A stretch of 64,000 nt of DNA from Klebsormidium nitens (Eukaryota > Plantae > Klebsormidiophyceae), in the NCBI GenBank assembly GCA_000708835.1, contig DF237391.1, positions 12,971 through 76,970 on the forward strand. Direction: 5' to 3'. A model generated the notes under the pieces. The model ran no database searches. It was not told where the DNA came from and saw only the letters and a list, made by a program, of their open reading frames with translations. The position numbers and the translations under genes were made by a program. How positions within the stretch are numbered: the first letter of the stretch is position 1; every line of letters starts with the position of its first letter. Shown here one piece after another: positions 12,521-64,000 of this stretch.

Positions 12521-14526
12521 CTGTCCGTAAGTCCTTCACTTTGCACCCGGCCTGTCAATCTAGGCTCATGCTTCCAGCTCACAGGCTCCCCAAGAAGCCG
12601 GAGTCATGAGGTTCAGACCTGGTACTTCAATCTGCAAACCCAAGTCTCAACTGCTTATCATTCTTTCAGTTCTGAACATAGTATTCATCTGCAACTTCCC
12701 CACGCTAGATGTGAGCACAAGATGTGAAGCACTTGAAACCGCGCAAGTTTCCAACAATGGTGACAAAAGTCCACCAAAATCACAATCTGATCAAAGTTAC
12801 AGCCCTTGCCTTACGCTAAAGCTCACAGATGATGGAGCTTTGCGTTGTTCGCCTGTAGCTTCAGGCATTTCAAACTGCCCAAGCAGTTGGCAGAGCTGCA
12901 CCCTTGGAACCTAGGAGGATCCTAGCTACCTACAAACTCCGCCATTTTGCCCCAAGTGCTTTTCACTTTACAAGTTCAACTTGCCGGGTTCAACTTCCAG
13001 AGTGCACCAGAGTGATGATCACCTTGCAAAGCAGAGCAAAACGGTGAAAAAGTGCATCTACCGTACCTCGGTATCAAGTTCTGAGGCTCTAAAACTGCTA
13101 AAGCCAAGAGAGCACATGTAGAGGAAATTTGACCCGAGGTACCTATAAAAGTTGGACTTGGTTGAAGTTGGGCTCACCCGGGCACATTCCGGTTGTGCAT
13201 ACCTAGGTATTACCCGGTGTGGGAGGCACGCACGTGCCCCTGCTCGGCGTTTCCGGCTCCTGGTTTCCACGTAACGTACCTTCCCTTTACAACCGGGGCA
13301 ATGCCAGCCGCACCGGGCAACTTTGAAGTTGCTTATAATTGATTCAGCTACCAGGTAGCTGCTAGGGCCGAGGCCCGAGGGCGAGCTAGCAACTGATCAA
13401 GAGCGCATGGGCCCCAGGAGCTCTGCTGATGTCAGCATCCTCTGCGGCCACGATGGCGGCCGTTTTACGGTTCCCATTGCTTCACAGTAGGGTTGGCCTG
13501 CGCAGTGCACAGGCTGGATGTGCCGTATCCAATGCTGATCCTACCGTACGCGCCACTGGCACAAGGGTACGTACCGACTTCCCTGTAACGCCAACGCTTT
13601 TCACCGTGATTCTAGAAGCCAAAGCGGTCTGTACCGGTAACACTGAAGCTTTACCGAATACGGCCGCCCGAAAAAGTGCAAAAGCGACACGGGCCACGGG
13701 CCCACGGCCCACCACGGCCCACCACTAATACCGGTGATCAATCGACCTTGGGCTGGGGAGCCGGGCACCGGGCCAGAACCCAGCCTCTCTCGCTGGGGGG
13801 ACAGCCCGGGTAACGAAGTCCCGACTCCCTCGGCACCATCCTGCAAACCAAGCAAGTCGTTCGCACCTTCGCAGCTTCTTTTTAGCTCGGTTTACTGACA
13901 AAGTCAGTACCGAGCTGTCGCAATCGACCCCGGAGTTTCAGAAAAGGGGGGAGTGGCAATGCAGACTGGATCACTCTATTAAGCCCGGTTCGACCCATCG
14001 AAAGCAGGTTTCAGTGGTTGAAAAGCTGAAATTGCAGACTCCCGTTTTCGACGGCTTTTGAGGTTCGATGCCCCGGAAAACTTTTTTTTTCGCCTTAGAC
14101 CCCGAACCCCGGCACGTGCCGTCGTCGCGGGTCCTATGTCTCGCGGCCGGTACGGCGGCCGACAACTAGATCGAGTTAAGCCTGCCTGCCGGCTGCTCGG
14201 TTATGAAACCTTTCGCACGCACTGCAATTCTGGAAACCCTAGGATATTGAAATCAATACCGCCCGGTAATATATTCAATGATTATAAGCGGGCCTGACTC
14301 CTGATGTCTAGCTAATAAATCACACTGCGAAAGGCTTGCAAACTCCAGATTTCATTTCAGAAAATTTCAAAATAATACTCCTTATTGTAAACCGAGCGAC
14401 CGCAGCGTTTCGCTGCCTACATTTTTTGAAAGTTTGAACAGACCAGCATCCAGGGCTACCTTTGCAACTTCTATTTGCTACATTTGCGTCAGTTGCGAGG
14501 GGTATCCACCGGTAAAGGGTGAAGCC

Positions 14527-15864
14527 ATGGCAAAGGCAGATTCGTCAGTCTCCGGCTCCAAGAAGGGCTCAAAAGTCTACCTTTTGACTGCTTGCCAGAC
14601 GGCATTCTCGCGTCCATTCTGACCCGCAGTACAGGTGTCCTCTTCTACGATCGGGAAATGGCGAATGCAGGCCGATCTCGCCAGGCTTCAGACTGTTTGC
14701 CCGCGTTTTCACCAAGTCGCTATAGAGGTTGGAAAGTTGCACTTTGATCTGCGGAAGCTGGACATGCGAGCTTGTGAAGGTTCTATTGTCGAACGTCTCT
14801 ACTTAGGCTCAGAGCACATCACAAGCTTGCTTTTTCAGATGAATCCTGCTGAGGTACTCTGCAGCGGGCTCGTCTCCAGCTTTGCGAGGTGTGCTCCAAA
14901 GCTCGAGAGCTTTAGTCTCAATGGTGCCAGGCTGGATTGCCCGGGTTCAAACTCTGACACATTGACCCAGCAATTGCTCAAGTCCTTGTCGAGCTGCCCA
15001 CAGCTGACGACCCTAAGTTTTGGGGGGGTGTTAGATGATGGCAGTGCCACCAGTTTGACAAGGGCTCTCTCGAGCAAGCGGCCCTTCCAAAGTCTTAAAC
15101 AGATTGATGTGGACCACATAGAGCTCTCTGACTCTGCATTGAGGTCTCTTTTGGAGCAATGCCCTGTCCTTGAGGAACTCCGAGCTTGGACTGTGATAGG
15201 TCTGGAGGAGCCGCAAATCAAAACAAGGAGCCTGCTAAAGCTCCTTCTAGTGACGAAAGCCCGCTGTCAAAGGTTGGAGATTCTTGCTCCAAAGCTCGTC
15301 GATGTCACACTCGATGGTTTTGGCAACGTCTGCATTGATGCCCCGGGGCTCCTCTCTTTGAATGTTGGTGGAGGCAGCATAACCAGATCGCAACCTTGGA
15401 ATATTGAGGAGTTGCACTTGCGAGGGCTCTGGGAGTTTCGCAATGTCATGTCCTTGCTGCAAGTTTGTAGCGGAGCAAAAACGCTGTTTTTCGGAGTGGA
15501 CATGAACGTGACTGTTGAGCCCGGGGACCATGCTGTGGTAAATCTGATTAGTGAGATCCGCAAGTTTAGATATGTGGAGGCACTTTACTTACATGCGGAC
15601 ATGGTCAGGTTACTTGAGTGGCCAGCCGGACCCGCCTTCAAAAGCTTAGAGCGACTTTCGATTGAACTACCCCTAGGAGAAGAGATCTACATTGATCACT
15701 GCGTCAATCTTGTTGACGGGAGCCCTAATCTGGAGTTTTTGGATCTGTCGTTCAGTGGACGAGACGCCTCATTGGAGGCCATCGATAATATGCTTCGCTT
15801 CATAGAACTACAAAAACGTTATCCCAACCTTGATATAAGAGTGCATCCGCTAGGTTGTTATTGA
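14527..15864 (+). CDS. F-box/LRR (RNI-like) protein; F-box N-terminus is out of frame with the main ORF (possible pseudogene or assembly indel)
   Basis: The 409-aa ORF 14635-15864 has DLARLQTVCPRF (second half of an F-box) followed by LxxLxL repeats (LESFSL, LTTLSF, LEELRA, LERLSI, LEFLDL). The first F-box half, LPFDCLPDGILASIL, is in another frame at ~14577-14621. Confidence 0.7.
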
Positions 15865-17618
15865 GACATTCAGTAGATTCTTGCGATCTTGAGCACCCGT
15901 ACAGCCATGAGGGCTGGAATGCTTGATCTTATTTGTCTAGCCCGAGCTTGTGTAGTTCCATACTTAATATGCATGGCCGGGTCCTTCTCGAGAGTCTTTA
16001 TGGAAACGTGATGCTTGGAGTTTGACAAGGTGATTTATCGTCGCACTTAGTATGACAAGAACTGGCAACTTAGGCTCGATCCTTGAACTCGGAATCATTG
16101 CCTATACAGGTTCACGAATTAGCTGATATTATTTTTCGTGACGGCTCGGCACGCCCATAAAGGTGATCTATATATCTTCAAATCAGCTGGCAACCACAAT
16201 CACCAATGATCCGAGAGGGCATGCATTTGAAGATTTGAGCGGCAGCGATAAGCTAGTTCAATGCTTTCGTAGTGCATGTTGAACTATAGCTTGAACGTGG
16301 TGCGTGCAAAGCTGCAGCTAGCGTTGACAAGTGTTGAGCGCTTATCATTGCCGCCCCGGGCAGAATTTCAATAGACAGTCGGATCTGACTTCGATGCAAT
16401 CTCGAAAGCGACCGCGCGGCCTACTATATCAGACAAACCGCGGTCACCGCGACAGCCATGCAGCATATTTACGATTGACACGCCGTCAATGTGTTAACGT
16501 GCACATGTCCGCTAATGGCCGGCAGCTATTCATAGCACTACCCGACATTCGTATGAACTTGAACATGCTGACATGAACACAGACTTCATCAACGATCTCA
16601 AATGGATTGCCATCGACTCATGTAATGTAGATGTAGCAGCTAGATGTAAGGCCATGGCATGAGCGTGAGCATGATGCCATCGAAAGTGCTGGCCTAGAAG
16701 AGTTTTCGGCATGCATACGGCTTCTGTCTAGGTATATTTCGGCCCTACTATAAACCACGTGTAATGTCTGGCATAGACTTTTCAAAAGTGCACCCATTTG
16801 TATTACGGTTGCCAGCGGTCACTCACATTTGAAAGTCCACTACAGTCCAGGCGCAATTGCAGATTGCAAGTGACTCGTCAAAATGTCGAACGTTTCCATG
16901 TCATGACCGTCCTAACCATAAGCGGGGCCGAAGCTTTGGAGTCTATTATTCAAATGCTAAAGCAACTTTACCGGGACAAGACTTGTTCTGCGAAGTGTGG
17001 CTGGCCAAAGTACGCTTGTTGGCAGCACGTTGAGCAGAGCCTGCCTATGTTGTGGCCTCCGAAATAAGATATGCGCACAACTTGCACTACTCTTGCATCA
17101 CGAAGACACGACCATGATCAAAGCTCCATTAGTCCTTTCCTCCTTGTATGAGCAAGGATAAGAGATCGACCAGGTGATCAATACAGCAGGCCTCACGGCG
17201 GCACTCATTTAGAAATGATCCAAAAGAGCTAGAGACGGTAGCTTAGGTTGACCTTCAAACGCAGACAACAGATTAGTGGCTCTATAATAGAACGCCTCTG
17301 ACCCTTGTTCGTAGCACTTGTTCTAGCTTCAAGGGTGACGGAACCCAAATGGCACGCGTACATTCCACTTGACTATGTTTTATGCCACTCTACACCGTTA
17401 CACCTCAGGTGTTACACAATGAAGCAGCTTTTGATCTCGCGTTAAGTTCTTTCCAATGCCGCATGCTCGTACGCTCCTCCTAAGGCTGAGAACTTGCAAA
17501 TTTGGCGAGTTCCCACAGGGCTTCCCCTTCCTGCCAGTCCAACTACTTTCGCGTTTCTGCATTTACTACCTGATCCTACTCTGACAGGTTCGCTTACACA
17601 TACACCTACCGTCTGCTT

Positions 17619-53800: not shown

Positions 53801-54154
53801 CTCTAAAGCCTGCTGCCTGATGCTAAAATCAGTCACAATGTCTCTCAGGGTCTTCGTACCCCTAAGCGACACAACAATGTGCCCATGGGTACTTCTCGCC
53901 AAAACCAGCCTCTGAACCGAACTCTGATACTCTCTTGGCAGAGGCAAGAACTCAAACTTGCCTACAGGTTGCTCATACAGACGGTTGAGCACGGCATCCC
54001 TGTTCTTAGCCTTTATCTGGTACACGGCCTTGCATAGGACGGCAGCGTCAGAGACCTTCTCCTTCCAAGTTGAGGAGGACGGTGGGGGCAGTCCTGGTGG
54101 AGGGAAAGGAGTAGGTTCCACCATTTCAGCCTCTCTGAAAGGAAGGACCGCCAT
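50818..54154 (-). CDS. Class-3 lipase (alpha/beta hydrolase) with long acidic/basic C-terminal extension; 3 exons
   Basis: VVSLRGT..D..TD, AHRGF, nucleophile elbow FTGHSMGG, FTFGMP, Asp motif RNDPVPR, His motif EHMMHTY. Junctions RAQ|GIP and PR|LMP are phase-consistent; stop TAG 50818-50820. Confidence 0.88.
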
Positions 54155-54317
54155 AGCGCGCTGGTGGGTTCATCAGCACGCCTTCAGCAAAGAGTTCCTC
54201 CCCCGTCTTTGTTTGTGGCGCTGCGAGTACGGTACGAGACTTTTACTAGGAAGTCTTCCTACTGGCAAGACTCTGTTACAGCACATTTCAGGCATGCTGC
54301 ACGATTCATCACTTAGT

Positions 54318-54388
54318 TAGGGCCTAAGTTAGTCCTAATCAGGCCCTATTTAAACCATTAAGGAGCCCTAATTAGGGCCTAATTAGGC
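54318..54388. repeat. Cluster of short palindromes/inverted repeats
   Basis: TAGGGCCT (54318-54325) ... AGGCCCTA (54341-54348); perfect palindromes GCCCTAATTAGGGC (54365-54378) and GCCTAATTAGGC (54377-54388). Confidence 0.85.
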
Positions 54389-54737
54389 ACACTAAACCAA
54401 GTTTTTCGGCACATGGAAGAATATGTCAGACGTTCACTATACGATGCATGTCGACGTGCTTACATGTACCATGATCGTGTGACATTATCCAAGCAAGTCA
54501 TTCAATCTCTTTTTTGATTTTGCCCTCTGCAGTATACCGAAAGAAACCATTTTGCAATCTGTACAATTTGACTAGCGTGTGTCACCGTTAAAAGTATTAT
54601 ATGCTGTCACGAATGGAGCTCCACTGCATCACGAAAGTCAAGACTCCGACGAACCCTTAAAGTGTTTATGGTTTCCCCTCTATAGAAACTACTCTACTTC
54701 ACCATCTCTCCGGCGCGGCGATTTTCTGGCCCCCCTC

Positions 54738-55642
54738 TCAAGCCGCTCCCTTCCCCCTCTTTCCACCCTGCTTCGACGTTTCAGCCCCTCCCTGAGGCCC
54801 ATGCGCAGCTTCCCGAGCCGCGCGCTCTGCAGCCATTCGCGTCTGGCGCTGCAACTCCGCCTTCTGGGCCCGTTTAGCATCCTTTGTCGCCCTCTCTCTT
54901 GCCTCCCGTTCGATTTGCTTTGCGGACTTCCACCTCTTCTCGTCCGCTTTGCCGGGGTCGTACTCGACCTTCTCACGTTTGTGCCCGAGGCCGTGCTCCA
55001 CGGCGGCTTGCAAAGGCAGAGTGTTGTCTTCGTTCCGAATTCCGCGGATCCTGCGCGCTAGGTCCAGGTCCTTCTTCTGAAGGGTCTTCCGCTTGCCGTG
55101 CGCCTGGCAGAAGATCGCGTCACCGAACAGCCCTACGACAAAGTCCTGACTTGCCTCCAACAGAGCGTCCAACGCCGACACCTGCCACCTGGAGAAAAGC
55201 TTGCCAACTCGGTTTAGCAAGTGCTATGATAAAGGGGGCACTACATTCATTCCGATATTCCCAAACCGACATTAGATGTTGCAACGTTTTTCCCCCGGGC
55301 TGCCACGCTGGAACAGTGGACCAATGAGAAAAGGGGACCTGCAACCTGCGGTACCCAGTGCTTTTACGGGCAAATTCTCTACGGTCCCAGTCCCCGTACG
55401 TACCGTCGTAAATCACCGGTCGCAAGCAGTCGCCGAGTCGGCAGACACTGCGTACTCTGATTCAGTCTGAACCTAGGCTGAAATTTATCGCGCGGTGCGT
55501 AACTCCGGGGATTTTCGGGCTCAGTAGTGAAAACTCCAAGTCTGACATGCGGCGATTCGAATTCACTCGAACGTGCAGAAAGATTCGCATATTGGCTTGC
55601 CTCTTCCCCCTGGGAAGTGGGCAACCATCGGTATGGGTTCAA
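54738..55642 (-). CDS. Histone H3-like histone-fold protein with ~100-aa basic/charged C-terminal extension; spliced, start uncertain
   Basis: Exon 55188-54738 reads WQVSALDALLEASQDFVVGLFGDAIFCQAHGKRKTLQKKDLDLARRIRG, aligning to H3 [48 protein letters not shown]. It has a strong acceptor ttttctccag. Upstream putative exons give APRDKFQPR|EFARKSTGYR|R with matching phase-2 junctions. Confidence 0.8.
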
Positions 55643-56249
55643 TCGGCGCTGTATGCGGGGCAGCGCGGGCCCCGGCGCTCGGCCTGCTTGCGTTGACCGG
55701 GTTCGACGATAAAACGTACAGTACGGTGTTAAAAAGTTCCCGTATAATGGCGACAGGGTCCGTCAGACTGGGCCGCGCGTCGCGGTGCGGATTGCGGTTT
55801 AGAATCGAACAATTTGGTGGAAGTTTCTGCTGCTCTGAGTCGTCGTCGAACTAGACCGCGCTTAGCTGGGCGGGGTATACCTAATACATTATCTACCCGG
55901 CCTACCCTGCGTAGGTTGACAATCTATCTGTGCTTTGACGCTAGTGATGAATCTGCGTTGCATGCATGTCGTGCATGCTACCTTATGGCGGTACGTACTT
56001 TGCGGGCGTGTGAGACTCCGTCTTATTATTAGCGGTAGGTACCTCGACGGTTCGTTTATTTCAATGATCGCTTGAAGCGCGGCTAAGACTTCTGTACGAC
56101 TTTCGACTGCTGTGCTGTTTCTATGTCGATGGAGTTCTGTTCGTGGCTTCTGTGCGAGTCCTGTCAACTATTTGTAGCTGCTTTTTCGGCGCCTTTCTTG
56201 CTTCACTTTGACCTGCTTAAACTTCTGCTGCGAAAGCGTGATCTCGTCA

Positions 56250-59200
56250 ATGGCGTCGCCTGCTGATGATGAAGATAGATATGGGTCGCAGGTATTGTTA
56301 GGCGACGAAGTCTGCGCAACCGCGCTTGATGGTCGCTTCGAAAGTTGCGCAGGTACAGTTATCAGCTGGGAAGGCAAAGAAGCAGGTTTTTCTATTCGAG
56401 TGGCAGTGCCGCCTTCTCAGGAGGGAGCTGTATTGAGCGGTGTACAGGCATGCGAGATGGCATATGTAGTGCTTGTAGAAAACTGTACAGATAATGAGTC
56501 GGGTGAAGCTGCGTGCTCTGAGGAGCAGAAATCTGGCAAGTTAGATATGATCCTGTGTCCTTGGAAGCTGCACTGTACGAACAAAGTCCTGCCAGATGCG
56601 CTTAGTTGTCAGGTCTGCGGGGGCAGCGGGAAAAAGCGTTTGAAAGAATGTCCAGTCTGCACGCAGAGAGCATTCAATCAAGCACACCTTTGTGGTAATT
56701 GCAAGTACAGATTTGCGGAGCATCCTGGGTGGTTTAGGGGTGTTAGCAAGACGAAGCGCTTGCAGCAGCCATTCGAAATCAAGTGTTCTTTTAGCAACAA
56801 GCAGTATCATTACGGTAAATTCGACTCTGAAGAGCAGGCTGCTAGAGCGTATGATTACGTAGTTGAAGCGCTCGTGGCGGAAGGCGCTTACCCGAGGCCT
56901 CTCAACTTTCCTGACGGGTTGGCTATGGATGCAGCGGAGCGGGCGTATGCTGAACAATGTTTGACATCAATTAGAGGTAAGATGATGCAACGCCGAAGAG
57001 CACCCAAAACTGATGAGTCTACTTCGTTTCCGAGCCGTACGCTTCCCTTTGTAGTGTACGATGAACAGGAAACTGGTCGTGCAAACTATCGCGCTCGACT
57101 CAAGGTGGGAACTTGTGTTTATCAGCTTGGTGAGTATGAAACTGAAACGGAAGCTGCTTTAGCGCACGATTTCGTCGCGAGACAAGCACCTGGAAGCCAC
57201 AAACTTAATTTCCCTGCTTCTGATCAGTTAAAGCTGTGTTCTGAGGTGGAGAAGCGTTTGGAAAGCGTTATCTCGACGATGATGCCGAACGCTGGTTGTT
57301 CGGCAAATGACATCGCCTCGGAGCCTCTTGAAGACATAATTCGCGAATTTCGTCAAGCAAGTGATGAAGGACCTGTATTTGTTTGCACTTGCTGCCGCCG
57401 TACTTGGTTTTCGCATAGTATGCGAATAGTTAGTGACACTTTGAGGAATCGACTTGAAACTGATGAAGAGCTTGCTTGGTTGACCGGTCGCAAATCTGTA
57501 AACGATGAAGAGTGGATATGTTCCACATGCTATCGGTATGTGGCCAAACGAAGATGTCCACCTGGTGCGCCGCCTCACCAACCAGATTTTGCGACTCTGG
57601 ATCCTGTGTTACAAGATTTGACGAGTATCGAGAATGATCTGATTGCTTTGCGACTGCCTTTTATGAAATTACGTGGTTTGCCGCCATCGACGGCAGGAGG
57701 CTCTTCTAAAGCAGGTCAACTAGCTTTGAAAGGGATGGTAGTCAACGTTCCTGCCGATTTAAATAAGATTCAACTCGCTCTTCCAAGACTTATTGATTCA
57801 GAAGGAACTATACCCGTAGCTATCAAATACAAGTTGAAAACTAAGGCTTGTTATCGAGCGGCGGAGAACGTGCGCCCAGCAAAAATACGTGATGCTTTAA
57901 TTTTCCTGACAAGACAGCCGACTCTTTGGCACAAGCCTACTCTTTGGTATGATGCGTCTGTATCGATACGTTCTGACTGGCTTAACGAATGCAGTAAGCC
58001 AGCGAAAGTGACTATCTGCGACTCTCTGCCATGTACGGCCTCGCTTGGTCTTGAAAGCGGTCCGTTCGTACACGAACCAGCACCTATTACTTCGTCGTCT
58101 GATTCGGAGCCTGAAGAAGATGAGGACGGTCAGCTGCCGCCGGAAGAGACTATGCTGCAAGACGCGCCTGCGTATGTTAGTGCTCATTTATTCGGTGTGA
58201 ATGTGGCACCAAGTGAAGGTCAGACCCCAATTGGTATGCTTCAAGATGTGTATGCCGAAGAGAAGGCGTTTCCTTGTCTATTCAACGGATATGCTAGGCC
58301 TAAGGGCAATCAAAGTTACAGCAAAGTATGTAAATTTGAACTCAGTAATGAAGATAGGCGATTTGCACGTCATCCAAGCAACATATTTTTCAAACTACGA
58401 AAACTACAAGCGAGTTTCGTGTCTGGAGAATCATGGGTACGGTTACGGAAAAAGAAATTGCCAAATAATATATGTCCTACTGCTGGAGAACTTCGAAATC
58501 CAGCCGTTCAAACTTCTCTGGTATCACAGAATGTAGGCTACCGGGACTTTAAAACGCTACGCGGTAGTCCGGAGTATAACAGGCAAGGAAAGAAAGAAGC
58601 TTTTGCGATGATACGACAGTTAGGCCCGTTCCAAATTTTTGCTACTTTTACTATGTCTGAAACTCGTTGGGGTGTTCTATTGCGAACTTTGCACAAATTG
58701 GCAACTGGAGAGTTCATTTCTGAGGCTGCCGCTTTACAGTTACCTTGGTTGGATAAAGCGCGACTAATCAGAGATGATCCTGTCACAGTAGCACGTTGTT
58801 ATTGTAATCGGAGAGATCACCTGATCCATACACTTCAAAAATACTCGACTTTGATTGGACACGTCACAGACTTCTTTTGGCGCGATGAATTTCAACAACG
58901 TGGCTCGCCGCATACGCATGCTGCTTTCTATCTGGCCGATTCTCCTAAATTTGGAATCGACGATGATACAGCGGTCGTTGCTTTCATTGACGAACACGTG
59001 ACGTGTTCGTCTTCGGCTGCATCTCCGAGTGATCTGGCTGGGCAGTACCACAAACATAGGCGTGGCTACTGTCTGAAACGTAGCACTTCTGGAGGCAAGT
59101 CTGTTTGTCGGTTTGATTTCCCCCGGCCACCTTTGCATGAGACAATGATTTTGAATCCGTTGCCGGAAAGTATTTCAGACTTTAAAAAGCAGGAATGCGC

Positions 59201-62200
59201 GGAGTTCTCGAGACGAATAACAACAGGCTTAAGGCGTCTGGAGTTGGACGAATCAAATCTGCATCGTTTGTCGTGTTCCGAGTTCTATGCTAGCTTGTCT
59301 TTGACACCCGCAGAATATGTACTTGGTCTGCGGTTCAGATTGATGAAACCAGCGGTGTTTTTGCGAAGATTACCTTCTGAAATTTACATCAATAACTATA
59401 ATCCGAAACTGTTGAAATTGCTGGGAGGTACGAATATGGATATACAGTTCGTCCTAGAAGCGTACGCTGCGGCCAACTATATCAGTTCGTATATGATGAA
59501 AACAGATTATCGGCTTAGTAAACTCTTAGATCAAGCGTATGCCGACGCTCGGCGAGGAAACATGGAACTTCGCCGAGGAATAAGGTATGTGGGCATGGCT
59601 CTTCTAAAAGGTCAGGAAATATCGGCGCAAGAAGCGGTGTACGGATGCCTGGGGCTTCCGTACAGGCATAGCTCTCGACAACACATATTCATTCCAACAA
59701 GCATTCCAGAAAATCGTACTTTATTGATCAAAACCGACAGTGCCCTGCGACTCCTTCCGGAAGACTCGACGGAATGTGTTTATTCCAACATAGTCGACAA
59801 GTACGCGATGCGTTTACAAAATTGGAGCATGCAAGGCTCTGAAAATTTAACTTTAGCAGACTTCGCTGCGTGGTTTGAAGCCTCTAAGAGCTCTCCAGAT
59901 CTTCCGGAAGAAGTAAATGATGACGCTCTAGATGACACAAGTGTGAGAAATCAAGAGCCGGCACTTGACTTTGACGACAGCCGTGACGTGTCTGGTTCTG
60001 TCAGATATCATAAGCGCGAAAAAGCGAAGATCATACGGTACGCGAACTTTAAAAAATCTGAGGATCCCGAACTATATTACCGCGAGCGTATTATGCTGTT
60101 TCTCCCGTGGGCATTTAGCGGAGACAGCTCAATGGCTCTGAGCGCAGCTGAAACCGATATACTACTGGCTGGCTATGACACTTTCGAAGCCCGCTATGAG
60201 GCTGAGAAAGACGCCATTGAAACTGCTGCAGCAGTCTACGATTATCACTCTAATATTGTCTGGGACGAGGTCGAAAGATACGCAGAAAACAAGGCAGCTG
60301 AAGACGCAGACATCTTCGGTGATACTTCAGAGGATCCGTTCATCCGTAATTCAAACGTGACCTCGGAAACAGGTGCGCCTGTCGAGTTCACAGTATCACC
60401 AGACTTCGTGCCGTCTGCAGCTTCGTCCGCTGTAGAGAAGCTACCCCATTCACAATTTGTACTGCCTGATGATGACTTCCGTGCACAAATGCGGTCGCTT
60501 ACGACAACGCAGCGATCGTACGTGGATCATGTCTTACATTCGTTAAAGTTCCCGGGTACTCGAAAATTTGTCGAATTTCTTACCGGTGGGGCTGGAACGG
60601 GTAAAAGTCTGGTTATTCGATGTATCACACAGCTGGTTATTAGAACGTTCAGCGGAGCTATGGGTTTGCAGCCAACTTCTTTGAAAATGTTGTTAGCCGC
60701 GTTCACGGGAAGTGCCGGCTTCAATATAGATGGTGTGACGATCCACTCCGCTTTTAAACTTCCGCTGTATGCGAAACTAGAATCTTACATTCCAGTCGCT
60801 GGTGAAAAAAAAGCGACTCTTAGAGACGCATACACAGATCTCAGAGGGTGCGTCATTGACGAAATCTCAATGACGGGTGCTAAATTGCTACAGATGATCA
60901 ACTATCGCTTGCAAGAAATATTCGAGTCTGTCGATCCGTTCGGCGGACTTCCGATACTCTTTGGCGGTGATTTGTTTCAGTTGCAACCGCTTTGGGACGG
61001 CTACGTCTTCGAGGGAGTTCGTAAAAACGGAGTACTGAGTTGTTAGCAATTTGTGGGAGGAGAACGTCGAAATGTTTGAACTCGTTCAAATCATGCGGCA
61101 GCAAGAAAACTTGGAATTTGCCGAAGCGCTTAACCGGCTGCGGACAGGCAGTCATACTGCAGCGGATTTAGCGTTGTTTGAAACGAGAGTCGTAGATCCG
61201 CTGAATCTGCCAACAAGTTATTCTGCTTTTGACAAGCATATTTTTGCCACTCGCAAAAAAAGGGACGCCCATAACAGTCTGGTTCTGCGCCTTACGGGGG
61301 GTTCCGAATGTGAAATTCATGCACGAGATGAGCCGTTATCATACGGTGCTTCAACAAAAGACCGCGAACACTTTCTGTTTAGAGCTGCGAGTATGCCGGA
61401 TACAGAAACGGCAACATTGTTTGCGGTTTTACAGCTAAAAGAAGGACTCTTGGTCGAAATTACTTGTAATACAAATAATCCGGACGGATTGTACAATGGA
61501 GCTACGGGATACATCCGGCGGTTCCACGATCTCGGTGGCCGCGATCCGCACGTTATTTGGGTAGAATTTTTAGAAAATAGAATTGGGCAACAAACTCGTG
61601 AACAATGGGCTTCTCTGTATCAGCAGTGCCCGTCTATTGACTCTGCGTGGACACCAGTATTCCGAATTTCTCGAACCTTTCAAGCCACTCGAAGAATTGA
61701 AAGTACAATTTTGAGAACCCAGTTTCCTTTGCGACCTGCAACCGCCGGAACCTTCTACCACACACAAGGTATGACTTTGCGGAAGGGCTCTCTCGATTTC
61801 AGGGGCGCCTCGAAGCATCACGTGGACGCAGGTCGTCACTACGTAGGTTTGAGCCGGTTTCCTGACTTGAATCAGCTATTCATACTAGATCCTGCTTTCG
61901 ATGAGATTATAGTAAGCTCTAAGGTACTTAAAGAAATGGCCCGTCTTCGGCAACAAGCGTGTGTGATCCCATGTATTCCACAAGTATCTATCAGTCCTGG
62001 GAGCGATCGAGAATTGCATTTACTTGCTCACAACGTGCGTTCTTTGCGTCTTCATGCTTCTGACATATTTTCAGATACTAATTTCCAACGCAGTCACATA
62101 ATTGTCTGTACAGAAACGCGGGCGTCGCCCATGTGGGACTTTTCCTCGCTGGAACAGCCTGATTTCGATTTATTCCGTGCAGAGGCTAATCCATCTGGGC

Positions 62201-62709
62201 GAGATGGTTTCGACAATGTTTTGGTGTACATATCGAAGAGCGGTCGAATGCTAAGCGGCACCGTTCATTCTGCCTTCTCTGATTGTCATTCATAGGTGTT
62301 GTGCGTGCATGTACGCGGCCGTCCTGATCCTGATTTCTATCTCATAGCAGTGTATAGATCACCATCTGACTTCCAAATCGACCGTTTTTTGGAAACCGTG
62401 CACTCGTTCATTGCTAACGTGATTCAAAGAGCGCCTACTTCTTCCCCCTCATTCGTATGTGCAGGAGACTTCAACATAGACCTCCTAAAACCTTCTGGTG
62501 CAGCTAGCCGACTTATGGACATTATGCGTTCTTTTAATGCTCAATTGTTGAACTCGTTGCCGACTACGAATCAGGGCGCTCTTCTCGATCACATCTGGGC
62601 ATCGTCATCTCTAGCAGGCGCAGGAACAACTAGAAACTTGGAGGCGTATTGGAGTGATCACTGCCCAGTGCACTCCACGTTTCGTTGGCACGAGTCTGAG
62701 TCCAGGTGA
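56250..62709 (+). pseudogene. Rep/Pif1-helicase/AP-endonuclease polyprotein with N-terminal Zn ribbon and two AP2 domains; frameshift near 61040-61050 and in-frame TAG at 62293-62295
   Basis: Zn CQVC..CPVC..CGNC; AP2 x2; CTCC...CSTC and DLTSIENDLIALRLPFM..LKGMVVNVP (Helitron N-terminal block); Rep FATFT, EFQQRGSPHTH, YISSYMMK; helicase GGAGTGKS, AFTGSAG..IDG.TIHS, IDEISM, GGDLFQL, IMRQ, QFPL, YVGLSR; EEP HNVRSL, CTET, YRSP, GDFN, LDHI, SDH. Confidence 0.9.
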
Positions 62710-63116
62710 GCAGCGAATATTCTGTCCATTTGTACTTTGAGATATTGGGCAACATAAAATTCGCAGATTCTGCAGATTGTGCGCTCGTGAAGCGGCGCAC
62801 GCGAAGAATGCACCCGCTAGGGAAAAGGAGCGCGTGTGAAAGGGAATGCGCGCGCGCGCACAAACAGGCGCACGCGGTTGGTCGTACTACAAGAACTCTC
62901 AGTTTGGCTTCTCTGCTGCGATTGTTCATCCGTTTCATATCTCCGGCGCGCACAGCCTGAAGCTGTGTCTGCGCAAACACTGATCTAGATCATGCACAGT
63001 TTCGGCTTCAAAGACGTCGCATGCACTTAGAACGCAAACACGACTTCAGCTGTATCTGCACGCAGCTTTCAACTTCTGTCATTTCGCGTCATCTTCTAGT
63101 ACCTTCTTCACATTCG

Positions 63117-63298
63117 CCACATCAGCGTCATTCGCAAACTTTCCATCCTTCTCCCACATCAGTGTCATTCGCGAACTTTCCATTCTTCTTCGGCTTCTCC
63201 AAAATTTGTTAGACTTATCTGCGCACTGTTTACAGCTCAGCAAACACGACTTCTTTGACTTATCTGTACATTGTTTACAGCTCAGCATGCACGACTTC
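63117..63298. repeat. Two pairs of direct repeats (37-bp and 45-bp periods) between the endonuclease and the OB-fold gene
   Basis: ccacatcag(c/t)gtcattcgc(a/g)aactttccat at 63117 and 63154; gacttatctg..ca.tgtttacagctcagca..cacgacttc at 63212 and 63257. Confidence 0.85.
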
Positions 63299-63520
63299 TG
63301 AATGACTATCGTGACATTCTTACGTTCTCGTCTATCTTATGCTTCGACTTCGCTCTGCTGTGGCATATCGATACAGGCTTCTGTGTGCCTATCAGCCGTC
63401 CTCAAACGGCTTGCAGTACTGCCTTCCTCGGTTTCAGCGATCCTTCTTCCAAATTCTTCTGTTCTGCTGCACAACGTACTTCTAGCAAAAGAGCGCCGGG
63501 ATTCCGTCCTTTCGGGAACA

Positions 63521-63838
63521 ATGGCGCTGAAAAAGCCAGATGTCCCAACAGTCTCAATCAAGCAGGTCGAAGAATTTCCAGTGGATGCGAGCTTCTTCCA
63601 AGTGCATGGCAAAGTAGTCGAGTTAGACAGCCCCACCGAGAGCAACAAGCCCACTGTGCGCGAGCTTCCGTACGGCCATTTCCACACAACGCAAGCTGTT
63701 TTGCAAGACAAGTCGGGCGCGAGAATGACGGTGGAAGCCGTCAGCAAAGACAAGAACTTCGTGGAGACTGTCAGCAAGCAATGCTCGAAGGGCAACACCA
63801 TCCTGCTGTACAGGCCGGTTGTGGCTTCGTGTAGGTAA
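63521..63838 (+). CDS. Putative OB-fold ssDNA-binding (RPA-like) protein, first exon
   Basis: MALKKPDVPTVSIKQV...FQVHGKVVEL...GHFHTTQAVLQDKSGARMTVEAV...GNTILLYRPVV follows an OB beta-barrel pattern. Strong donor ag|gtaagt at 63835 and acceptor tttcag at 63911. Confidence 0.55.
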   Translation: MALKKPDVPTVSIKQVEEFPVDASFFQVHGKVVELDSPTESNKPTVRELPYGHFHTTQAVLQDKSGARMTVEAVSKDKNFVETVSKQCSKGNTILLYRPVVASCR

Positions 63839-64000
63839 GTTTTCATGGTTTTCTGATCTCATTGTTTCTTGTCTGAATATTGTTTTCTGGTCTCATCGTT
63901 TCTCCTTTCAGCTGCCGTCGCTGCATACAAAACGCTGGCCCTCGAATCAAGTTGTTGAACTACACTTTTTGCACAGAAGTGTGACGGTTGGACAGGGTTT

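Follow-up and report, generated by a model that had tools for sequence, protein, structure and literature searches.

Organization of the Locus

The last part of a 64,000-nucleotide stretch of Klebsormidium nitens scaffold DF237391.1 (the window), from position 54318 to its end, carries a fragment of a histone H3-variant gene on the minus strand, a long plus-strand reading frame for RepHel, the Rep-helicase transposase of a Helentron rolling-circle transposon, and the first exon of a gene related to RPA70 and MEIOB (Table 1). A preliminary description of this DNA had interpreted the three as a cluster of tightly packed genes, forming a system that would recognize, replicate, and chromatinize its own DNA. 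The RepHel frame, the histone-fold open reading frame (ORF), and the OB-fold exon all exist; the RepHel frame is broken, the H3 sequence is 5′-truncated, and the OB-fold gene is represented by exon 1 only. The scaffold (strain NIES-2285, assembly GCA_000708835.1) is 76,970 bp long, and base 64000 of the window is also its last base, leaving the right-hand continuation unassembled, and the Helentron copy is 3′-truncated because the scaffold ends there.

Table 1. Features in the right-hand part of the window (positions are those of the 64,000-nucleotide window)
Feature	Position	Strand	Basis or remark
Palindrome cluster, CCTAATTAGGG twice, with related sequences	54318-54390		Repeat search; fold z -2.3
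Truncated copy of H3-variant unit	54421-55238	-	818 bp: last 48 nt of intron, exon 2, ~315 nt of 3′ flank
Histone-fold ORF	54738-55220	-	Pfam Histone 3e-14
Spacer between H3 fragment and Helentron 5′ block	55239-55587		349 bp
Imperfect hairpin, candidate 5′ terminal hairpin	55588-55635	+	Arms 55593-55608 / 55612-55627
5′ noncoding block	55612-55727 (L007:4-120)	+	Near-identical between the window and L007
RepHel reading frame	56208 (ATG 56250) to 62709	+	ORF listing, Pfam
RepHel part 1	56250-61034	+	AP2-1, AP2-2, Zn region, DUF6570, Rep, Pif1 helicase
AP2-1	56733-56918	+	Copy alignment
AP2-2	57084-57221	+	Copy alignment
Cys-rich Zn region	57375-57533	+	
HUH motif of Rep	58905-58928	+	Reads HTH
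YxxxYxxK motif of Rep	59475-59501	+	Reads YISSYMMK
Walker A, Pif1 helicase	60585-60608	+	
Walker B, Pif1 helicase	60852-60872	+	
+1 frameshift	61035-61038	+	Alignment to uninterrupted relative P0010
RepHel part 2	61039-62292	+	Helicase C-terminal half and EEP N-terminal half
EEP N-terminal motifs	HNVRSL ~62029, CTETR ~62107	+	
In-frame TAG	62293-62295	+	Within endonuclease domain
EEP (AP-type) endonuclease, C-terminal half	62296-62709	+	Pfam Exo_endo_phos_2
Tandem repeats in RepHel-RPA spacer	63117-63189 (37 nt ×2), 63212-63299 (45 nt ×2)		Repeat search
Conserved upstream region and exon 1 of RPA70/MEIOB-like OB-fold gene	63375-63834	+	ATG 63521, donor AG|GTAAGT at 63834

The Transposase Has Helentron Architecture and Two Lesions

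The RepHel sequence is divided among three ORFs, at 56208–61046, in another frame at 61051–62295, and after a TAG codon at 62296–62709. Pfam places Helitron_like_N (1.3e-18), PIF1 (1e-18), DUF6570, and a trace of REP_ORF2 on this sequence, and Exo_endo_phos_2 (8.8e-9) over 62296–62706. Together with the located HUH and two-tyrosine motifs, the matches reveal a Rep fused to a Pif1-like SF1 helicase, and the Pfam domains and catalytic motifs uphold the Helentron architecture (Rep, Pif1, and C-terminal EEP) that had been proposed. In a comparison with 5.8 billion proteins, the closest to RepHel were two proteins from Logan contigs, P0010 and P0011 (47–53% identity), followed by animal and metagenomic RepHel proteins (~35% identity); most of the best matches contain DUF6570, and many contain endonuclease (EN) or OTU domains. 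An exact look-up of five window ORFs in the protein collection found no near-identical copies.

P0010, a relative of 1,714 amino acids (aa) located on locus L005, is uninterrupted and served to define the lesions. Four nucleotides of the window (61035–61038) fall between its consecutive residues 1162 and 1163, where the frame changes, and the second segment of the alignment runs across the TAG at 62293–62295. In P0010 and in the copy at locus L006 the EEP endonuclease is continuous with the helicase, whereas the TAG splits it in the window. The window transposase is thus read as a defective copy, with one frameshift and one nonsense codon, and would be unable to act alone because of these two lesions; the intact ORF of an autonomous element is lacking. 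Lesions aside, the HUH, YxxxYxxK, Walker A and B, and EEP N-terminal motifs are all kept.

Its architecture is that of the Helentrons (HLE2), to which the element is provisionally assigned as a defective and 3′-truncated copy. Sources on Helentrons include Poulter 2003, Thomas et al. 2014 (PMC4067079), and HELIANO (PMC11417382). As published, they are defined by a RepHel protein that ends in an AP endonuclease and contains DUF6570, with OTU and RPA genes as optional additions (PMC4067079, PMC11417382), DUF6570 being almost exclusive to HLE2 according to HELIANO (PMC11417382). In the K. nitens element, too, a single ORF encodes Rep, a Pif1 helicase, and an AP-type (EEP) endonuclease at the C terminus, the transposase contains DUF6570, and an RPA-like gene for single-stranded DNA (ssDNA) binding is present as an accessory. 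It differs in the two N-terminal AP2 domains of the transposase and in the location of the RPA-like gene downstream of RepHel, RPA genes having been found by HELIANO to be enriched upstream in HLE2 (PMC11417382). The pairing of a Helentron RepHel-EN with an RPA-like gene is established biology, RPA genes in Helentrons having been described already, and the window copy, broken and incomplete, adds little beyond confirmation.

Read-derived contigs, both RNA-type and from DNA run X5, were compared with window positions 54001–60000, and no joint was found within that interval. The RepHel frame is matched by three short RNA-type contigs (56334–56574, 57740–57958, and 58225–58437), each from a different run, with depths of 2–2.6 and 0 mismatches. 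They suggest low-level transcription of the window copy or an identical copy, or DNA carry-over. Over 56473–59323, the differences of run X5 from the window consist only of C>T (82 places) and G>A (40 places); the run looks like bisulfite-converted DNA, and many RepHel cytosines appear converted in its contigs.

A Pair of AP2 Domains Is a Conserved Part of the Transposase

The AP2 pair is kept in four diverged copies (the window, P0011, L005, and L007). The RepHel N terminus aligns with P0011 at 30% identity over 517 aa and also with an upstream ORF of L005, two blocks of the alignment showing the AP2 signature, and L007 covers the AP2 region within a continuous match to window 56193–62697. 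Taken singly, the window sequence gives a weak Pfam AP2 score (17.5 bits, below the family cut-off of 33.3). A profile of three N termini gave a match to WRI1 (7wq5) that spans the two domains together with the linker (E 1.9e-7), and further matches to ERF1, TEM1, and ERF096 (~3e-3 to 1e-2). Between the window and its K. nitens paralogue L007 (75% nucleotide identity), the ratio of nonsynonymous to synonymous substitution rates (dN/dS) was 0.25 in the AP2 region and 0.05–0.16 in the other parts of the frame. The conserved AP2 blocks, the WRI1 profile match, and the dN/dS of 0.25 argue that the pair is a selected part of the transposase and no chance fusion in one copy. The fusion noted in the preliminary description thereby stands: other copies conserve it, and purifying selection acts on it there.

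A separate search with the AP2-Zn region (residues 140–470) among proteins of 887–2,821 aa returned nothing and is uninformative, as related copies are split into shorter ORFs. The HELIANO paper (PMC11417382) does not use the term AP2 in its main text (0 occurrences), and the searchable literature yielded no report of a Helitron transposase with AP2 domains. The K. nitens pair resembles the plant double-AP2 factors of WRI1/ANT/AP2 type (PDB 7wq5) in having two AP2 domains joined by a linker; the plant proteins are free-standing transcription factors, whereas the K. nitens pair is fused to a transposase. The fusion provides a testable way into the question of how a Helitron-type transposase locates its ends or targets, and it is relevant to the movement of AP2 domains between streptophyte hosts and their mobile elements.

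An RPA70-Like Gene Accompanies the Transposase

Only exon 1 of the RPA-like gene lies in the window, the remainder falling beyond the scaffold end at 64000. An exhaustive HMMER search with exon 1 retrieved the chimeric gene model GAQ88595.1, the K. nitens protein GAQ92911.1 (P0047), and two shorter relatives from Logan contigs. P0047 is a 424-aa product of a five-exon gene, is 88% identical to the window exon 1, and is located on L007 (DF238146.1). L007 matches the window at 75–79% nucleotide identity in four segments: 55612–55813, 55957–56056, 56193–62697 (the whole of RepHel), and 63375–63836. The same gene follows RepHel-EN on L006, where RepHel is ~47% identical at the amino acid level and exon 1 is 45% identical (E 6e-16), and on L011/L012, where the EEP domain is ~38% identical. 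The dN/dS of exon 1 is 0.12. Because the gene follows RepHel-EN in each of four diverged lineages (the window, L007, L006, and L011/L012), it is assigned to the element, and the OB-fold companion gene originally proposed is confirmed. The gene, whose predicted product is an RPA70-like ssDNA-binding protein, is a constant component of this Helentron lineage.

P0047 had no match among Pfam and PDB sequences and is therefore very diverged. Its neighbors in a language-model protein atlas belong to MEIOB/hold'em and RPA70 clusters (0.96, 210/256 features shared). The AlphaFold2 model of the whole 424 aa is poor (predicted local distance difference test score, pLDDT, 34.5), with a usable part at residues 28–96 (pLDDT 70–80) that has the β1-3/α/β4 order of an OB fold. 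This part matches a single-stranded DNA-binding protein (SSB), Teb1 OB-A, and RPA70 DBD-A with moderate Z scores of 5.5–6.3, and nearly all of the top 50 structure matches are OB folds of nucleic acid-binding or replication proteins. The model thus predicts an OB fold of RPA/SSB type. By inspection, P0047 has a multi-OB architecture and a Cys4 zinc ribbon. It shares these features with RPA70 and MEIOB, along with the fold matches to RPA70 DBD-A, Teb1, and SSB; unlike RPA70, it is 424 aa long and has no RPA70 N-terminal domain.

Two candidate features were rejected. The OB-fold ORF joined to a short second exon had been considered as a complete protein of ~128 aa; the 88%-identical paralogue has 424 aa in five exons, and its exon 2 has no counterpart in the final 164 bases of the window. 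The direct repeats reported between RepHel and the OB-fold gene are present as two tandem pairs. The spacer that holds them is not conserved in L007, and neither L007 nor L006 has corresponding arrays; the repeats are specific to the window copy and were dismissed as a conserved feature of the element.

The 5′ End of the Element Probably Lies near Position 55588

Upstream of RepHel, the noncoding block at 55612–55727 is almost invariant between the window and L007, while the coding DNA of the two copies is only 75% identical. Homology to L007 reaches 55612, which corresponds to the first base of the L007 contig and falls in the loop of the hairpin. A diverged third copy, an expressed one represented by an RNA contig, is homologous to the window from 55588 on and unlike it to the left. 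These comparisons place the 5′ terminus of the Helentron probably near 55588, with ~350 bp separating it from the H3 fragment on its left. The invariant block is probably a cis-acting terminal region and a candidate for a terminal element or an AP2 binding site. A metagenome scan with 36 nt of the conserved 5′ block gave 0 matches, and RNA-gene searches rejected the block as a tRNA or known RNA.

The spacer at 55239–55587 had no match in any fetched locus. The palindrome cluster noted at the left in the preliminary description is present, with CCTAATTAGGG occurring twice; its DNA fold (z −2.3) is mildly better than that of shuffles, and none of the other fetched loci contains its palindromes. 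The cluster may belong to the intergenic DNA of the host or form the terminal hairpin of some element.

The Histone Sequence Is a Fragment of an Independent H3-Variant Family

Exon 2 of the minus-strand H3 sequence runs from ~55190 to the stop codon at 54738 and encodes α2–α3 of the histone fold and a basic/acidic tail of ~100 aa. The ORF covers only positions 73/74–122 of the 122-position Pfam histone profile. The histone fold is incomplete, and the fragment cannot make a histone because αN, α1, and the start of α2 are missing. Searches by tblastn with the exon-1 proteins of complete copies (L002, L009, and L010) found no match in any part of the 64 kb. Two peptides encoded near 55310–55370 in other frames, ARKSTG and PLFQRG, had been considered as remnants of an H3 N terminus; they were rejected, since the real exon-1 proteins match nothing there.

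A protein search identified a Klebsormidium H3-like family with 55–95% identity and a conserved long C-terminal tail, and six loci with H3 units were compared: K. nitens DF237929 (L001) and DF237790 (L002, three copies), the Logan contig L003, and the European Nucleotide Archive (ENA) contigs L004, L009, and L010. In blastn comparisons with L001, L002, L004, L009, and L010, limited to copies that extend that far, the left-hand limit of homology to the window falls at 54421–54435 and the right-hand limit at 55237/55238, and the other copies stay homologous to one another past both breakpoints. Complete copies have an upstream exon for an N-terminal extension, αN, α1, and an extended loop 1, followed by an intron of ~205 nt. 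RNA-type contigs cover 54407–55238 with 0–2 mismatches. Past 55238 they continue into sequence equal to the L002 intron, and at 55190 they are spliced to exon 1 as found in L001/L002-type copies; no RNA contig over 54001–60000 crosses the window-specific junction at 55238. Because the contigs leave the window in this way, the H3 transcripts come from near-identical complete copies elsewhere. Exon 2 has a dN/dS of ~0.17 (window exon versus L009/L010), a sign of purifying selection. RepHel similarity is lacking at all six H3 loci, and the RepHel loci L005, L006, and L007 end too early upstream for the converse comparison. The H3 sequence is accordingly best described, from these alignments, as a fragment of an independent, multicopy, expressed H3-variant family. 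It most likely lies outside the element, and at best is a captured fragment of the kind that Helitrons and Helentrons often carry.

The most striking claim made for this locus, a transposon-owned histone, is therefore left unsupported. A functional H3 variant of the element's own, chromatinizing its possibly circular DNA together with AP2-RepHel and an SSB, would fit the open exon-2 ORF, the expression and dN/dS of ~0.17 of the family, and the head-to-head arrangement with RepHel. The partial histone profile, the lack of exon 1 in 64 kb, the complete family members at loci without RepHel, the absence of RNA contigs over 55238, and the nonhistone first exon of the gene model GAQ88594.1, at the start of the conserved Helentron 5′ region (55566–55628), largely refute this idea, which we regard as extremely improbable. 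What had been called a private histone variant is an 818-bp fragment of a far more abundant family, and the "recognize, replicate, and chromatinize" system fails because the H3 gene, truncated and with no exon 1 in the window, was not confirmed. As for the order and co-occurrence of the three genes, the RPA-like gene follows RepHel in four lineages and other copies keep the AP2 domains; the H3 units are unlinked to RepHel in every fetched locus.

The H3-variant family (L001:2176–6427, L002:3366–7933, L004, L009, and L010) occurs in K. nitens and related samples and is characterized by a long N-terminal extension, an extended loop 1 (…CDAETARRPGTDEDGKF), and the conserved C-terminal tail of ~100 aa. 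Its copies are often convergent pairs in a repeat of at least 6 kb. The family may be a histone-gene array, a CENH3-like family, or cargo of a transposable element (TE), and as a multicopy, expressed H3-variant family it may merit a study of its own. An annotated 1,818-aa gene without a Pfam match (L002:11017–17274; ORF 13156–16494, 1,113 aa) lies between the third H3-variant copy and a Ty3/gypsy pol gene.

Two annotated gene models of the window look, from their sequences, like artifacts. GAQ88594.1 ("histone H3", 170 aa; 54738–55628, minus strand) joins a 21-aa first exon unrelated to histones to the H3 fragment, and that exon, at 55566–55628, lies at the start of the Helentron conserved 5′ region (hairpin and block). 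GAQ88595.1 (220 aa; 60000–63838, plus strand) is a chimera of a piece of the RepHel frame and exon 1 of the RPA-like gene.

Extent of the Element

Taken together, these results make it probable that a defective Helentron extends from the hairpin at ~55588 past 64000, with an AP2×2-RepHel-EN transposase and an RPA-like gene, and that the H3 fragment is independent of it and most likely outside. Several points weigh against this assignment. Neither terminus is defined, the 3′ end lying past the scaffold end at 64000 and the evidence for the 5′ end consisting of a single diverged RNA contig, the start of another contig, and a hairpin with a nonsignificant fold (z −1.3). A T|T target and a subterminal inverted repeat are not demonstrable for the window copy. 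L007, the sole same-genome copy with upstream sequence, is cut at 55612 and so offers no second-copy check for H3 upstream. The frameshift at 61035–61038 could be an assembly error. The summed contig depth of run X5 (600–1100 on the H3 unit versus ~20–40 on RepHel) suggests, roughly, that H3 units are present in much greater number than RepHel copies, but contig depth is not copy number.

The palindromes at 54318–54390 could also be the true 5′ terminus, which would put the H3 fragment inside the Helentron as captured passive cargo. The fragment is truncated on both sides, as is typical of captured fragments, and lies just 1 kb from the RepHel start, beside the palindromes; its identity of at least 99.7% to an expressed copy elsewhere would point to recent acquisition. 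Some Helitron2/Helentron families have 5′ hairpins (PMC5148889, PMC11417382), and the Culex Helentron-Cq-32A, in eight copies, carries H4 and H1/H5 gene fragments (PMC4067079). In both Culex and K. nitens, an incomplete, nonfunctional histone fragment lies beside or within a Helentron. The eight copies prove capture in Culex, whereas in K. nitens no second copy was found, and the fragment probably lies outside the 5′ end, derives from an H3 variant, and has an ORF that is still open. Against capture, homology between copies and the conserved hairpin block begin at 55588–55612 and no further left, the palindrome motif is found in no other fetched locus, and H3 stands beside RepHel in none of these either; we consider capture unlikely.

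A further alternative treats 54318–55587 as a separate, nonautonomous minus-strand element that carries the H3 fragment and lies head-to-head with the autonomous Helentron, with the palindromes at its 3′ end. Helentron-derived HINEs have palindromes near the 3′ end (PMC4067079), and here the palindromes are on the 3′ side of the minus-strand fragment. However, neither the palindromes nor the 55239–55587 spacer recurred in any fetched locus, and no subterminal inverted repeats were seen, which makes such an element very unlikely.

Proposed Mechanism

In the arrangement that we favor, a Helentron starting near 55588, the intact transposase would combine two tandem AP2 domains, a Cys-rich zinc module, DUF6570, an HUH/Y2 Rep, a Pif1-type helicase, and a C-terminal EEP endonuclease. 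The second product, encoded ~0.8 kb downstream, would be a multiexon RPA70/MEIOB-like protein with several OB folds and a four-Cys zinc ribbon. By analogy with the Helitron family, Rep would nick the terminus and become covalently linked to one strand, the helicase would strip off the nicked strand, the RPA-like protein would coat it, and the EEP nuclease would assist at the target. The AP2 pair would probably confer DNA sequence specificity, recognizing either the conserved terminal block of the element itself or targets. A broader proposal joins three parts: an AP2 module that works and is selected in the transposase for sequence-specific recognition (for example, of 55612–55727), an exchange of the double-AP2 architecture between TE and host, and an H3-variant fragment that is genuine cargo. 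That all three hold jointly seems distinctly unlikely.

Flanking Sequence

To the left, the region adjoins a minus-strand host gene, Lipase_3, whose 5′ end is covered by RNA-type contigs to ~54202. Window 54272–54308 contains a 32-nt motif common to several RNA-type contigs of ~300 nt that are otherwise unlike the window. In one of these contigs the motif occurs at both ends, inverted, and it is probably a fragment of another repeat.

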